NCBI GenBank assembly: GCA_038496445.1
Contig: JALMLS010000418.1
Span: 62,001-126,000, forward strand
Direction of reading: 5' to 3'
Length of the DNA stretch: 64,000 bases
Source of the DNA: Trichosphaerium sp. ATCC 40318
Taxonomy: Eukaryota > Protista > Tubulinea
Part shown: positions 15,965-58,345 of the stretch, piece after piece
How positions within the stretch are numbered: position 1 is the first letter of the stretch
Layout of the letters: every line of letters starts with the position of its first letter
Made by a program: the position numbers and the translations under genes
The notes under the pieces: generated by a model
What the model was told of the DNA's origin: nothing
The model's input: only the letters and a program-made list of their open reading frames with translations
Databases searched by the model: none

Positions 15965-16420
15965 CCAACTTTTCTTATTGATGCCAAATCACTTATTCCC
16001 AACGACACATGTTTTTGCTATGTTTCTAAATATGAACAACCACTTTTAGTAAAACAAGTAACCAACGTTCATGACAAGGATACGGTAAGATAACTAAAAC
16101 AAACAAATGTTATCTCGAGTAGTAAAAAAATGAGAAAAATGCAAATGAACCAAAATATTTTAACTATTTAACACGCTTTGTTTACAATTACTTTGGTACT
16201 AGGGCTAGAGTTTTGGCTCAAACAAAAATCGAATACGTATTGATGTCACAACATAAAATACGACAATAGCTAACATCAATCGTTAGCAAGCTACTCTACA
16301 GACCTATTCACTTTAGTACCAAAGCCGAAAATGATATATATTATACCATAAGTTAGTCTTCTTCTGTAAGTCACTTGACTGACAAAAACTTCTTTAGTTC
16401 AATTTTTAGGGGTTTTTTAA

Positions 16421-40115: not shown

Positions 40116-43100
40116 ATGGTACGGGCGATGGCGTGTTAGTTAGAATAACTGAATAGGAAAAGGACACTTCACAAAAGATGTTGTGGGTACCAAGTGAAAC
40201 AGACGGTTTCGAACTTGCAAAGCTTGTTGGAACTACAGAAGCTCATGGAACTACAATGTATCAAGTTCTCGCACCAGGACAAAAAGTAAGGCTATTACAC
40301 AACGAAAATACTTCTACAGAGTGTTAAACAACACCTTGAGAATTCTTCTTCCTGTCACAAACATGTTTAACTCCTTACAGAAACAAATATCGGTTCAGAG
40401 GGACCTCTGTCATAACGCAAACCCCACACAGGATGGTGTTCCAGATAATACAACACTTATAGAATTTAACCCCGCAACTCTTCTCCAAAACTTACGTTGT
40501 CGCTATAAAAAGGATCAAATATACGTATGACGCTTGTTTTTACTTCTACTATTCACTTTTTCTCAGACTTACACCGCACACATTTTAACGGCAATTAATC
40601 CTTATAAACAACTTAATATCTATGATGAAAAGACTATGGAAAGGTAATTAAGAATTCTAAACGTAATTAAACGTCAGAAAAAGGCCAAAATCTATTTTTC
40701 CTAATTTTGCCAATTTTACGACAAAAACGCTAACTTTGGATTCAATAGATATGTTGCTAAATATATAGGCAATGAACCACCTCATGTTTATGGTATAGTA
40801 TACAACTCCTTCCTTTTATGTTGTCTTACATTTTTGGTGTAGCTATTGCAGATAAGGCGTATAGGTCTCTTAAATATCAAGGTGAAAATCAAGCTATTAT
40901 AATGAGGTATGAAGCGTGATTTTCGAATTTTTCAGAAAATTTTGTGACTGATTGATTTATTTTTTCAGTGGTGAGTCTGGTGCTGGTAAGACGGTGACGA
41001 GTAAGATTGCTTTGCGATTTTTGAGCTTTGCTTGTCGTCGAGATAAGGATAAAACTGAACAATTAGAACAAAGAATTTTAGCATCGAATCCTATTCTTGA
41101 AGTGAGTTTCATGCATAGAGGTTCTATTTTTAATTATTTTCTTTAGGCCCTTGGTAACGCCAAAACATTAAGGAATAATAATTCATCGCGCTTTGTAAGT
41201 TTTATCATAGTTCAGTGTCAGATGGAAGTAACAAAAAAAAATACTTAGGGTAAATTCATAGAAATTCATTTTGACGAAAACTATCATATTGAAGGTGGCT
41301 TGATTACAACGTGTATCCTACTTGCATAAATGACTTTGCAACTTTTCAATAACTCTACATTACCTCTTTAACTCTTGAAGACCTTTTAGAAAAGTCTAGA
41401 TTGGTACATCAACCAAAGAATGAGAGGTTCGTGTCATAACACAAGTCAACTATTTCTTTTTTTACTAACACGTGTAACTTCCAGAAATTTCCGTATTTTC
41501 TACCAGATGACTCTTGGTTGTACTGAAGCTCAACGTAAAGAATGGAATTTACACCAACCAGAGAAATTCCATTATTTGAACACTTCAGGTACAGACAGAA
41601 AAACCGTTTCAGATAAGTGACTTAAGCATTGTTTAAGGTTGCATTCGGATTGAAAACTATGATGATGCAGCCCACTTTAAAGAATTCTTGGTACTGTTAA
41701 AGTATTCTAATACAATCTTACATGTTATTTAGAATTCATTAAACGTCATGGGGTTCACGCAAGATGAGCAAAATATGCTATTACGCACATTAGCTGGTAT
41801 TTTGCATTTAGGAAATCTCGAGTTTTCTCCAAAAGAAAAAGGTCAAGGTTGTGTTGTTAAGAATATGGAAGGTATGTAAATATCATAGTATGTGTTTTTG
41901 TAGCATTTGGTGCTCATATAAGGCTTAGAAGTTAAATACGCTGCTGGGTTATTTAAGTTAGATGAGAATGTCTTTGTGACTAGTTTACTTCATCGTACTG
42001 TGTCTGTAAAGGAGCAAGGTAATGTTAGTAATATTCAAGTACCATTAAAGCTTCAAGAAGTACGTGTTTGTTTGACTTTTTCTTTATTAAAAGTTGGTCG
42101 TTTTGATGGTTTTGTTATTGATTTTTTGCTTTCTTCTAGGCCGAGTATGCACGTGATACGCTTGCTAAGACGATTTATTTACAACTTTTTGAATGGGTTG
42201 TTAAGCGTATTAATGATAGCTTGAGAGATAAGAAAAAATATGATAGTGATAGTGAAGATGAGAGATTTATTGGGATTCTTGATATTTTCGGATTTGAGAG
42301 TTTTGAGGTTAATTCGTTTGAGCAGTTGTGTATTAACCTAACAAATGAACATTTACAAAATTACTATGATGAACAAATATTAAATCAAGAGCAAGAGATT
42401 TATAAACGTGAGGGTATACAGTGGACAGATATTAAATTCAAAGACAACTCTTTTTGTATAAAACTGCTTGATGAGGTACATGATCATTTGTTCTCTTCTT
42501 CGTATTAGTTTGTGATTGACACATGTTTTTTAGAAGCATCATGGTATATTATCTATACTAGATGAAGAATGTCGTATGCCTACCCATAGTAATGGTCAGT
42601 TCCTAAGGAAGGTTTATAGGAAGCACCTCAGAAATCCGTACGTAACAAAACCATTTTTCAGTTTGATTTTGTTTTGACTTCTGTCTTAGGTACCTTTCTA
42701 AGCCCGCTGTATCAGCCGCAAAAGGAGGTAGTGGTAAAGCGAGAGAAAAGACAACAGCAAGAACTGATGAAGAGGCGTTTTGTGTTAAGCATTTCGCTGG
42801 AAAGGTACTTGGTGTTTCTTTTCTAATTTCTTCGTTAGTGAGCTAATAAGTTTTGTAGGTTACCTATGATGTAACAACAGGATTCATTACAAAGAATAAT
42901 GATATGATACACCCAGCTTTAGAAGGTCTCATGAGTGGTAGTAAAGATCCAATCTTGGCTAATATATTTGCTGTAACCAAAGAGCGAAGTACTCGGTTTA
43001 ATACAATTAGTGCAACGTTCTTGGCTCAACTTCACAAACTTATGGCGAGGTATATACCTCTAATATATTTCGTATACACTTACATATATTACTTTAGGCT

Positions 43101-51659: not shown

Positions 51660-54600
51660 CAAAATATGAGAAGTATTCGTATTCATGAATGTGGTGGCCT
51701 TCACAGTGTATGTGGGTTTAAAGTAGCATTTAATTAAGCTGTGGGCGTTCCAATCTGCATAACGTTGTAGATTGCAACCTTGCAACCCAAATTGGGTTCT
51801 AGCAAGAGATGCTATACTGCATGCTGAAGCAAACTACCGAAGCAAACATGTGCAATATGGAAGGTATGAATAACATTTTTAGCGTATCACGTGATAGCCA
51901 ACAATGTGTTGCAAAGCATACTTATTTTGTAGGGTTTTACAAGAAGAGGTTTAGGTGTAAATGCATACAGTAGATCCAGTAAAGGAAGATTTTGTATACC
52001 TGACACATGAGACAAGAGTTTACAAATCCTAAGCTGTAAAAACCATAAAAGACTTTTTGTAGCTGGTGTTTGCAAAAGCTATTGTAGAATAAATACATTT
52101 GCTTATTGAGATGTTTGACAAGGTTCAGTACTTCAAATCACTTATCATAGTCTATATTGTATACTGACAGGAGAGCACTAGTTTTAGGCCAATCCGTACA
52201 ATGTGAATAAACAGATTTAACAAATTCTGACCAATCTGAGTTTTGAGCTGTGCAACAATAAATGTACCTAAAGTGGTTTTTTAGCTAACAATTGTAAACG
52301 ATGGAGATGTAATACAATAGTTTGTCGAAGAACTCTATGCCGACAAGTACTTGATACTTGTTAATGATATCCATGGCATCATCCCAAGCCTGTTGTTGCA
52401 TAGAGTACACAAATGCTTGCTGCACAAAAGGCTTAAAAAAATAGTCTTTTTCCCAATCCTCAATGCTACTATTGTGTTGTTAACTAAAGTTCAACTGTTT
52501 TCAGGGTGTACTTTGCTACTCCTTCTTTAAGGATTTCAAACACTGTCCTATCATCAATATACATCAAGTATGTAGACATGTATTTTTTAATGTCTGCCCT
52601 AGTTTTCGCAGAAGACATTTGGGAAACAGCTAACTCGAAGGCACGTGCAACTCCCTTTTTGTGTTTTATATTAAAACTCTCTTCTTTCGCTGCTTCATCA
52701 AGTGCATTGATCGCAACCTTATTTCTTATCTCATTACTTAGAGAAGACCAAGGTACGCTCCAACTCTTCCCGACAAGGTTACTCTGAGACATGGCGACTT
52801 CAAAATCATCTGAAGCCAATGCTACTTCCATTGTGTACTTTTGATAAAGCGACTGTAACAAGTGTTAACACGTGCTATAAAATTGAGGTTTAGTACGAAC
52901 TTGACAACCCATCCAATCAGCAGCGATTTGTGCTTCTTTGAGGGCGTTTACTTTGTCCTCAATTATTGGCAACGTAGTTCCGTTTTTGATATCTTGTAAT
53001 ATGCCTATATGACATCTTAACATGTGAATGAGTGCGATGGTGAATGAACCGTACGTTTAACACCTTTCAAGGTGACATTGTTTCCAAGTTTAAGTACAGC
53101 TTCTTTTGAACTGCTCTTGCTGACTTCAAGTTGATTGGCGATAACAGGGACTTGCTTTGCGACAGTTGTTTCTACTTTAAACTGAGAAATCAACTGTTCG
53201 TCCTTCCACACCTCTATTAAATTAACGACTCATAGATTTATTGGTAACTTACGGATCGCTAACATTAGATGTCTCTGAGCGGAAAACTGTAGAAATGTTG
53301 AAAATGCATAACTTACCCGAATTTTGCTTAAGGCAAATATGTCGCGTAGCGCTACACCAAAAGTGTATTATTATCGCAATACAAGGGGTGAGGTGTAGAT
53401 CTACACGACATGTATACAGAATCATGAGATATTAGCTACCAAGTAATGGTATTGGAGAAAGCAATATAAGACTTTAGCGGTTTCTAAGTTCATAATGAAC
53501 AGTTGATAACTAGAGGCAGAACGTAGGTGAACAGTAATTTTTTTCTTTGTAGTACATGCTCTCTTTTGTTGTCTCTAATATCTCTCCATTCAATGGTGTC
53601 AATCAGTTTGCAATCTTCTTTGCATGTTCATTGTTTTGGAACAAAGTAATGCAATAACACGGCTTCGATCTAGAAATTTATGGGCATAAGAACAACTTTG
53701 ACAAATTAAATACTTACCTATACCTTGCGACAAACTTGGAGGAAGCTATAGACAAGAAAAACATGATAAGAAAAGAGTTGGAAGGAAGAAAAATTCAGAT
53801 GTTGTCTGGTAAGAAAAAAAGAAGAAAAAAAAAAGTAGCTCGTTTTTCTTACCACTTCGTTTAGGATGTACTTCATTACAGGTCCATCTATAGGAAAATG
53901 ATCTTCATCTCTTGCAATGCGTATGTAGTTATTGAATACAAATGTTTTATGGTTACGGACTATAACCTTAAAACGTTTGAGAATAGTAGTACGCTTTACT
54001 TCATCTTCCAATCCTAGAAAACAATAACTTGTATCAGTACGTTTGGTTTTTGTTTCTTGTCATGTCCGTTCAGTCAAGTACGTAGAAATAATCTTCTGTT
54101 AGTTTCATGCCTCCAAAAGTGCTCTAATTGAGACCTTACTGTTTTAGATAGAATCCAGCTACGCCACCATAAAGAGAGCACTTTTTGGAGACAAGAACAT
54201 GGCTATAACTTGCTAATTATCATGTGCGTACCTGCATCATGAGGTGATGACGAGATTCGCAATAGTTCTTGTATCCTTGGTGAACTTGTTTCGTATTCCT
54301 CGTTAGCAAGTACCTCGATGGTATGCTCTAATTCATTACACATATGCTCGGGTATCCTATACTTTTGTTTAGTTGTCTCAAACAGAAGAAAAAGTTAATA
54401 TTTAAAAAAGTTACCTTGGTCTTTGAGAAGCAGGTACACCTTCCCACATTTGTTCTGAAAGTATTTTATGCTCTATGAAGTTGTACAAGTTCATGATAAT
54501 ATTGAAAACACTCTAAAAAACTGTTAATAATAGCCACACGGTGTTGTTTGTATTTTTTTTTTGTTTGAGCTAGAAACTTCATTTAATCAATAAGTACCTC

Positions 54601-56178
54601 AACTGACTCTCCTTCTACATTCAACCCTTCCAAGTTCATACTTGTTAGTACTTCCCTGCAGTGAGCAACAAATTCTTCATCTTTAGCACATTTATCTTCA
54701 TCCTCCTCTAAGTTCTTGTTTAACATCCAAAAGAAAAGAACAAAACATAAATCTCATTTTTTTCTTACGAATATTCATTGCGAACATTCTGAATGGATTC
54801 TTTTCATCTTCCATGCTTTCGCTCCAGTTTTTCTTTTTGGCAGGCTACATAGCATTTATAAGAATAAAACAATCACATACCATTAAACAAAGAAAGTGTG
54901 TAGCGTACAACTGATGTTGATGGGTCAAAATCTACAGCTGCTTGGTTTGCAATCTGAGTGTCGATGTACTCGCGAATATTGAACACAAATGGTTCAACGC
55001 CAAAATTCACTTTAACTGTTTCTCCAAAGCTATGAAGTCCAACTAGGAAATGAAACGATGGTGCACTTTGCAAATTCTAGAAGCAAAGAAATGAGCACTC
55101 AAACAAAAATTGGAAGAACGGAAACAAATTACTACTCCAAGACCATACCTCTACAGCAACACCAACCATCTTTCCGTTTTTAGTGTAGAATAACTCCTTT
55201 GTAGGAAAATTGATACCACAGCCAATAACGTCACCTTGTAACACGACAGTCAGTAGAAAACAGAACGCTTGTTGTAGTACCAGTTGTATAAACTGGTCCC
55301 CATTTAAGTCCGAATCCTCCTCCTTTATAAAACCGTCCATCATCACCATGATACCCATAGGACTCAGGCTTCCATCCAGGTTGAGCTTTGGTTTTAGGAA
55401 ATCCTTCCAGGCCAATACCGATACCGATATAACTAGAGGAAGTCAACCAGATTAGAGCATTTTAAACGTAGTCAAGTTACTGCAAAAAATCTCACCCGTG
55501 CTCTCCACTGGTTACTATTTTCGCTTCAAAGTATGCTACAGTACAAGCATTACCAAATGGTAGGATTGGAGCTGGCAAAATGCTTTGTGCGGACCATAAG
55601 AGTCAATAGAAATAAAGTCACAAAAAAATATTAATATAAAATGTCGTTTCTTGGTTTTTTGCGGATACACCAACTGTGTCTGATTCCTCGCAGTTGTGAC
55701 CAATGTACTCAAGAGTCATTTTATCATTAGAAAGAGTTACACATGAAGTGAGTAAGTCTGAACAAACATGAGACATCAAAATATTACCAACTGCACACAG
55801 TGTACCTTTGTCGTCTAAGTGCATTGACAATATTTTGTCCCACAATCCAACACGACTGACGAATAACGATCTCCATGTTTTGTGTGTTGCAGGTAACTGG
55901 AATTGGCGTATTGTACGGGCACATAGACTGCGCTAAAGCGCTCTTAGAGGAAAAGTTCTAATAATCAATCAAAATGCGTACCCACAAGTTTTCTTTTTGT
56001 AGCACTTTAGACCACAGCGTACAGACAGGAGCTAAGTTAGCAATATTTCGTAGCGGTAAATACGAAATGATACTGTCAAACACCTAAAACACGTTACTAT
56101 CGCAGATTAGACAAATTAGTTGACCTCTAATGGCACAATAGCGACAAATGACCCGTTAGGTTCCTTGAACTCCTCCAT
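51660..56178 (-). CDS. F-box plus SPRY (RanBP9/10-type) protein with a long unknown C-terminus (multi-exon, 3' end approximate)
   Basis: VPLEVFDSIISYLPLRNIANLAPVCTLW (F-box); AYFEAKI, PGWKPESYGYHGDDG, TTGDVIGCGIN and VKVNFGVEPFVF (SPRY). Confidence 0.85.
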
Positions 56179-56439
56179 GAAATACTTTAGGCGATAATAC
56201 TTACAAGCGTTGCTTTCAGTACAAAAAACAAGAAAGTTGCTCACAAGCACGTTCAGTGATTTCTTGGCTTAAGTCAGTCAAAAAAAAAACCTGTTGATCA
56301 GTTGACTTTTTCTCATTCCGCAGAGCGTAAATCGCGGCGTAAGGTTAGGTTTGCCTGCACACTCTTAACGGCTTTTTGTAACGCTAACAAGCTAGCCAAA
56401 TAATAGTGAGTCTATGCTGTACAAAGGTGTTTCTTTATT

Positions 56440-57809
56440 TCATTTAAGATTGATTCTTTCGATATTGATTTGGTCAAGTCTGCGTCTTGTTTCATCAAGA
56501 ATAGGTGCCGTAGAGCATCGTTGCTTTACCATCTCTTTCATTAACGCAGTATTGAAAGGATGCATTGCGCCATGTGTTAAACACAAGTGCTTAACTGAAT
56601 CAGTAAGCCACCGACAAGATTCCTCAGAAGAGCACATTCTTGTTTCTTGACAAAAGTTAATCATCTCATAAGCTAGACGAGTATGTGTAGCACTATCACC
56701 GTCCAATTCAGAGTCTAAAAATAATACAATAAGCAAAAGAACAACAACGGCAAAAGGTACCCAGAAAAAGGGTAAACTCGATTTTTCGAGTCAATTTCAA
56801 AAAAATACGTACCAATCAAATCTGATATTACTCTCGCCATAGGGAGTACTTTTTGGTCAGAACGTGACATCATGTCAGGTAGTACACGTGTTAATAGATG
56901 GTTGAGTTTGTTCACACCGTCATTATTATTGATGGTACAAGCTTGACACAAGCACTCAAATCCAAGCTTATTGTTACGAATTGTTTTTGGTTCATGGATT
57001 GGTATGTATGCTATTGTAATCTCTTCTCCTTTCTTAATTTTCTTTGTGGCACGTATAACAACTTGTTGACCATAATTAGGGTTATCAATCTGCATATTGG
57101 CAAGAGAAGCATAGCAATTTGGTTGACAAGAGTGATTAATCCTCGATAATAAAAAACTAAAGACGCCATGTCCATCTATGAATCGTCCATAGTCGCGCCA
57201 AACACCCGCGAGTGCAGCAACAAGTAGTGGAAATTCTATACCATGATATGTAGTAAACATTGTAAAGTTACTTGGAAAGTCCTACAACGTATTCGTTACA
57301 CATGACATTCATTAAAAAATACATCAAAAAAAAAAAAGAAGAAAATAAGATTGTCACTTTAGAAAGCCTATGGAGCCTTTTTACTTTACCTGGAAATGAT
57401 GTACTTCTTCTTCTGCTACTTCAATGTCTATCAGGCGGTCGAAGGCAACGTGATAACTTCTTGGACAACTCAGAAAGTAAAATATAAGGGATTGAACAGG
57501 ATCATTATCTTTGTCTATTTTCATTTGATGACATTCTTGCTTGAATATAACTGTTCCAGGCTCCACGGTAGCTGTACTAAACATGCCCAAACCTTTTCCA
57601 ATGGACGTTCTTATCTCAAAAGGTCGTCCTGGTTGCCTCCAAAGCTCCGAATCGTCTGTTGATTGGTAATGGTATTCAACAATACTTGCCACAGAATAAA
57701 ATCCATATAGTGCTAACAAACCGCCCAACGCAATACCCAAGAAGTATAACGCGTCAAGGGCTTGTTCTTTAGTGGTTTTTCTGCGTTTTTGTGTGGTGAC
57801 TTGTTTCAT
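56440..57809 (-). CDS. SET-domain (SMYD-like) methyltransferase with an N-terminal transmembrane helix
   Basis: GKGLGMFST...PGTVIFKQE, SRINHSCQPN, RATKKIKKGEEITIAY and post-SET GFECLCQAC; hydrophobic ALYFLGIALGGLLALYGFYSVASIV. Confidence 0.88.
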
Positions 57810-58345
57810 TGTAGCAAGGACCTTCTTGGGAGGGCTTATGTTAAATTCTACAGTCTCGTCAGAGATTGAAGCGACCAAAAGGAAGCGTACTTTTAAATTT
57901 TGAATCAGTGTCTGTTTTTCCACCCCGTACATCTGATATAAGCTTTGCAAGCTCTTTACGTTGTATTGCAGTTAGCCCAAGCTGAAAATAAAATCAATAG
58001 AACGTTTTTACACTGAAAGGCAGCAACCTTTTGATCTGAGCAATACCGTCGAATTTTGAGCGTAGTTATACAATTTTGAGCTCGAAGAACTTTCGAGATG
58101 TGCTTGTTCGATTTAGCGACGTCTGACGCTTACACAATCATTAGCATATCTAAAACAATCGTCTAATGGATAAGAGGCGTACGATGTGTAACATTTTTGC
58201 TAGAAACCTTGAAAGCACTATGATAACCTCGTCTAAAAGCTAGACGAGACAACATGCTATCTACAGAAACACTGAGCCCACTTAGTAGGGCTTAATCGTT
58301 AAATAATTAAGCAAGGCGGATTTTCACGATTACCAGACTTTATTG

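Follow-up and report, generated by a model that had tools for sequence, protein, structure and literature searches.

A transcript-supported 75-nt intron with GT-GG termini, probably of the U12 class, in an amoebozoan F-box/SPRY gene

U12-type introns have a 5' splice site of the form /RTATCCTT and a branch site of the form TTCCTTRAC, the A of which is located ~10-13 nt from the 3' end, and they lack a distinct polypyrimidine tract. In human and mouse, ~5% of U12 introns have non-canonical ends (PMC1557818). Among the U12 introns that start with GT, the most common non-canonical subtype is GT-GG, with 5 cases in human and 3 in mouse, and the GT-GG intron in ARAF is conserved (Sheth et al. 2006, PMC1557818, Table 2). 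The distance from the branch site to the 3' splice site is important in recognition, with an optimum of 11-13 nt, and the choice of the 3' splice site is error-prone (reviewed in PMC3584512). In Physarum, 1,014 non-canonical introns are U12-type, amounting to 71% of the non-canonical introns, and the branch A of U12 introns is 9-12 nt from the 3' end (bioRxiv 10.1101/2020.10.12.336362). Vertebrates share a conserved GG acceptor in BANP (PMC4176328).

We followed up a preliminary description of a candidate intron of the GT-GG type in a 64,000-nt stretch of DNA (the window). The candidate lies in a gene on the minus strand that encodes an F-box and a SPRY domain. We found that it is removed in RNA exactly at its GT and GG ends. 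Taken together, the evidence makes it likely that this is a genuine 75-nt GT-GG spliceosomal intron of an expressed F-box/SPRY gene, removed most likely by the minor (U12-dependent) spliceosome. The features discussed below are listed in Table 1.

Read on the minus strand, the upstream exon ends GAG GAA TCA GAC ACA GTT GGT (EESDTVG) at 55669, and GTATCC comes next. There are two TGAs in frame inside the 75-nt stretch (55620-55618 and 55605-55603), and the frame picks up at TCC GCA CAA AGC (55593), which is translated SAQSILPAPILPFGNACTVAYFEAKIVTSGEH. The 3' part of the intron reads ...TTTCTATTGAC TCTTATGG, such that the branch-like motif CTATTGAC is followed by exactly 8 nt (TCTTATGG) up to the intron end at 55594; T-rich sequence is found further upstream, as in the neighbouring U2 introns. 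Past the intron end, an AG is first met at 55584-55583; it is located 11 nt inside the exon and would shift the frame if used. The donor matches RTATCCTT at 6 of 8 positions, and it does so exactly at the junction defined by the transcript. The branch motif matches the U12 consensus TCCTTRAC at 5 of 8 positions: the TTGAC core alone fits, and the upstream CC/CT is absent. The preliminary description had noted an exon ending DTVG followed by GTATCC, a frame that resumes at TCC GCA CAA, an in-frame TGA in between, and a branch-like motif plus exactly 8 nt leading to a GG end (here CTATTGAC and TCTTATGG, at 55609-55594). All of these sequence statements are correct on the minus strand, and the TGA that it mentioned is one of the two.

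Table 1. Features of the GT-GG intron, its host gene and the comparison introns in the window.
Feature	Position	Strand	Description	Evidence
F-box/SPRY gene	53853..56178	-	13 transcript-defined exons, 482 open codons; continues below 53853	joints, frames, Pfam
Upstream exon	55669..55757	-	...LLTSCVTLSNDKMTLEYIGHNCEESDTVG	transcript contig and translation
Intron	55594..55668	-	GT..GG termini, 75 nt, phase 0	sequence and transcript joint 55593/55669 (run X3)
Donor	55663..55668	-	GTATCC, the U12 5' splice-site core; +7/+8 are GC (consensus TT)	
Branch-like motif	55602..55609	-	CTATTGAC; presumed branch A at 55603, 10 nt from intron end	
Intron terminus	55594..55595	-	GG where AG is expected	genomic base from assembly alone
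Downstream exon	55496..55593	-	SAQSILPAP...AYFEAKIVTSGEH(G); the SPRY domain starts at its end	
Repeat copy 1	55654..55665	-	TCCGCAAAAAAC; starts 3 nt inside the intron	
Repeat copy 2	55582..55593	-	TCCGCACAAAGC; first 12 nt of the downstream exon	
Canonical alternative intron of the preliminary description	55536..55670	-	GT-AG, 135 nt, giving DTV-A-YFEAK	not observed
U12-like GT-AG intron	41313-41380	+	68 nt; GTATCCTAC...TCTTTAAC + 8 nt (TCTTGAAG)	sequence
U12-like GT-AG intron	17050-16990	-	61 nt; GTATCCAAT...TCCTTAAC + 8 nt (AGAACTAG)	sequence

The gene that contains the intron begins with an ATG at 56178, and its 13 exons down to 53853 translate as an open frame of 482 codons with the GT-GG junction included. 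Domain searches were done exon by exon, without a joined model. Exon 2 matched F-box-like (PF12937, E 1.1e-5) and F-box (PF00646, E 4e-4), and exons 6 and 7 matched SPRY (PF00622). The exon that follows 55496..55593 matches the Pfam SPRY profile from position 17, and exon 6 matched the SPRY domains of RanBP10 and RanBP9 (PDB 5jia and 5ji7, E 6e-9). The domain order is therefore an F-box followed by a RanBP9-like SPRY. There was no match for the 32-aa exon after the junction, a short query, in phmmer searches of PDB (E up to 10) and Pfam (E up to 1), and none in Pfam for the C-terminal half of the gene. We take the SAQSILPAP of the 32-aa exon to resemble the region before YYFEV in RanBP9.

The ordinary introns of the gene are very short (41, 46, 48, 49, 58, 61, 63, 64, 72 and 85 nt, plus one of 218 nt), and their donor consensus, mostly GTAC(G/A/T)N, is unusual for the major type. 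The upstream neighbour, at 56440-57950 and also on the minus strand, encodes a SET domain (PF00856, E 5e-12), and its stop is only ~260 nt before the ATG of the F-box gene.

Parts of the gene were contained in eight public runs, each with a share of sampled words ≤0.21. Four of the runs were placed on the region 53800-56300, and all of their contigs there were spliced, indicating that these runs behave as RNA. There were 11 joints in this region, 10 of which are GT..AG on the coding strand. The remaining joint, 55593/55669, is in record 8 of run X3. It leaves out exactly 75 bases, the ends of which are GT..GG on the coding strand and CC..AC on the plus strand. It was found in one contig of one run. 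The contig is 237 nt long at a depth of 2.3, has 89 nt on either side of the joint with an ambiguity of 0, and also bears the adjoining canonical joint 55757/55806. On the downstream side, 55505-55593 read straight through as exon. The junction that had been predicted from the sequence, 55669 joined to 55593 with 75 bases skipped, was matched exactly by this spliced contig.

The same contigs held other information about the gene. The 48-nt GT-AG intron at 55758-55805 (minus strand) is in frame and stop-free and looks coding (GTLCAVGNILMSHVCS), and it was spliced out in the contigs of runs X3 and X4. At 54937, the X1 contig is 3 bases shorter than the window, an in-frame indel after the SPRY core that is a strain or allele variant. 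In the region 53650-53853 (minus strand), contigs of X1 and X4 extend 171-215 nt past 53853 into a further exon (CTTCCTCCAAGTTTGTCGCAAGG..., around 53740), which gives the gene one additional exon or more.

It is possible, though unlikely, that the expressed DNA really ends in AG. In that case, the G at 55595 would reflect either a mistake in assembly or polishing or an allele carried by the assembled strain, leaving an ordinary GT-AG intron that could belong to either class. The contigs of the four runs are all spliced, and none spans 55594-55668. In addition, X3, the only run with the junction, and the window disagree at four exonic positions, 55720 (T>C), 55348, 55366 and 54465, so that X3 represents a different haplotype, that of another strain or allele. 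With AG, the intron would end in TTATAG, an unexceptional acceptor given that other introns here end in TAG, and switches between GT-GG and GT-AG are known between human and mouse, for example in SLC12A7 (PMC1557818). On the other hand, one substitution error at precisely 55595 is improbable a priori, and elsewhere in the window the gene is intact and matches the X2 contigs without a difference. If the window is part of the published Trichosphaerium draft genome, a long-read assembly with a GC content of 37.69% and a mean intron of 75 bp, then its sequence was polished with Illumina reads in three rounds (PMC10521059); the GC content of the window (about 0.37) and its short introns agree with that genome. 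In exact-pattern scans with N at the doubtful base, neither the JGI metagenomes nor the GTDB genomes contained a match (0 hits). The 33-aa ORF that spans the site on the plus strand was looked up as an exact sequence and gave nothing, and a protein word search for junction-bearing fragments with the stop-free ORF 55618-55932 gave no candidate.

With the GT-GG ends taken as real, the U12 class of the intron is probable, judging from the donor GTATCC and the non-AG end. We favor the U12 reading because GTATCC is unlike the gene's 11 other donors, namely GTACGC (x3), GTACAC, GTACTA, GTACTT, GTAAGA, GTAACT, GTGAGA, GTCAAC and GTATGG, and because the end is not AG. The 11 other introns all end in AG, and none starts with GTATCC. 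The TTGAC of the branch motif does not separate the two classes here: two U2-type introns of the gene, 55495-55433 and 54597-54513, have TTGAC and TTAAC at a similar distance, with the A at -11 and -12. This, the fit of the TTGAC core alone, the lack of TT at +7/+8 and the weak enrichment of the sequence pattern (see below) are neutral or count against the U12 class.

The preliminary description had referred to two GT-AG introns with the same 8-nt spacing, and we found both (41313-41380 and 17050-16990). Removal of the first restores the frame of a myosin motor (...HFDENYHIEGGLITT, then YLLEKSRLV...). The frame also stays open across the second. Both have strong U12 branch sites, and their +7/+8 positions vary (TA and AA). 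In all three GTATCC introns the presumed branch A is at -10, and this common spacing is a further point in favor of the U12 class for the GT-GG intron. Selection of the 3' splice site by its distance from the branch point is probable, in that it fits both the literature and these three introns. In such a mechanism, the GTATCC donor would be recognized by U11/U6atac, and U12 would pair with the TTGAC core, bulging the A at 55603. In the second step, the phosphate ~10 nt downstream would be taken on account of how far it lies from the branch; a G would be tolerated at position -2, and the terminal G would be kept.

An intron of the major spliceosome (U2-type) with a chance GTATCC start and a GG acceptor seems quite improbable. 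The U2 donors of this gene are degenerate (GTAYNN), so that only two or three changes separate GTATCC from GTACGC or GTATGG. For U2, too, TTGAC makes a good branch site, which in the U2 introns here lies 10-12 nt from the 3' end, and there is a pyrimidine-rich stretch ahead of the intron's 3' end. However, every other intron in the gene ends in AG, U2 introns have non-AG acceptors far less often than U12 introns do (PMC1557818; Physarum, 71%), and GTATCC would make up ~0.5% of U2 donors, a rough estimate from the 11 local donors. Using this last value, and assuming that U12 introns are ~1% of introns and that non-AG ends are at least 10 times more common in U12 introns, we estimate roughly that the U12 class would be very likely if the GG is real, and somewhat favored if the end is really AG.

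Taken by itself, the sequence pattern exceeds chance only weakly: the window has 4 occurrences of GTATCC-N35-65-TTRAC compared to an expected 1.39, and a count of 4 was reached in 6 of 100 shuffles. It is the transcript junction that raises the intron above chance. Another U12 candidate, at 16083 (GTATCCTT), was rejected, as the sequence upstream is full of stops in all frames. There were also 6 ATATCCTT sites in the window compared to 3.4 expected, none of them with a branch motif at a plausible distance. A search of the window with Rfam gave 0 matches, with no minor snRNA gene within the window.

The preliminary description had pointed out that TCCGCA is found just inside the donor and again where the next exon starts. 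The two copies are present, at 55665-55660 and 55593-55588, and are part of a longer imperfect repeat: TCCGCAAAAAAC and TCCGCACAAAGC are identical at 10 of 12 positions. This identity was reached by 44 of 5000 shuffles, and the corresponding values for the gene's other 11 introns are 7-8 of 12. Direct repeats favor template switching by reverse transcriptase (PMC4176328), and here the skipped stretch has an imperfect direct repeat of 12 nt at its two sides and the junction is supported by a single low-depth contig. The joint could be an artefact, either of template switching between the TCCGCA repeats or of a chimeric contig. Had the enzyme switched between the repeats, GTA would be retained and 72 nt lost, with an ambiguous cut, whereas the observed joint skips 75 nt, is 3 nt outside the repeat and has no ambiguity; template switching is therefore unlikely. 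Moreover, the joint falls exactly ahead of GTATCC and restores the frame, there is no 30-mer common to both sides that could yield a graph chimera, and retention of the intron would put two stop codons into the mRNA. Overall, we consider an artefact highly improbable. Barely credible is the possibility that the GT-GG form is a minor product next to a main mRNA spliced at the canonical GT-AG pair 55670..55536: that pair has canonical dinucleotides at both sites and keeps the frame, but the joint from 55670 to 55535, specified beforehand as the observation that would count against the GT-GG intron, was absent in all four runs, 55536-55593 is exon in the X3 contig, and the canonical form would remove 19 residues just ahead of the SPRY core.

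The repeat may also be the footprint of intron gain, by an insertion with target duplication. We think it rather unlikely that the gain was fairly recent, that a ~60-nt insertion with a 12-nt target duplication (TCCGCAAAAAAC and TCCGCACAAAGC) arose beside an exonic GTA-TCC that served as a ready-made U12 donor, and that the minor spliceosome of this amoeba cleaved at a constant distance (A at -10) regardless of the dinucleotide there. If this were true, the birth of a U12 intron de novo would be visible here, together with a pure ruler rule for choice of the 3' splice site. We found no other copies of the intron in the window, as would be seen for an introner-like family, beyond chance matches of 9-17 nt.

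The GT-GG intron is a further example of an established, already catalogued rare type, and the mechanism proposed for it is also already established; no current concept is altered by it. It adds a case from Amoebozoa to a catalogue of GT-GG introns built on animals and plants. Gene predictors that allow only GT-AG introns would mis-model this gene, either calling it broken or choosing the canonical alternative with the loss of the 19 residues.

The intron resembles the GT-GG U12 introns of vertebrates (ARAF, SLC12A7) in its U12-like donor, the G in place of A at -2, the terminal G, and a short distance from the branch site to the 3' end. It differs from them in having a much weaker branch site (the TTGAC core only), a length of only 75 nt and an amoebozoan host, and there is no known orthologous intron. 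The U12 introns of Physarum polycephalum (Larue, Elias and Roy) are also amoebozoan, with a reduced branch motif and the A 9-12 nt from the 3' end, and many of them are one terminal base off the canonical pairs, as is the case here. In contrast, the Physarum motif is TTTGA, with a matching change in the U12 snRNA, whereas the clear U12 introns here keep TCYTTAAC. The dominant subtypes in Physarum are AT-AG, AT-AA and GT-AT, and GT-GG is not among the subtypes listed. Like the intron described here, that of BANP has a GG acceptor supported by transcripts, and other lineages have AG at the BANP site (Parada et al. 2014, PMC4176328). The GG of BANP is an alternative 3' splice site, whereas the GG of the F-box/SPRY gene is the sole site seen and the sole one that keeps the frame.
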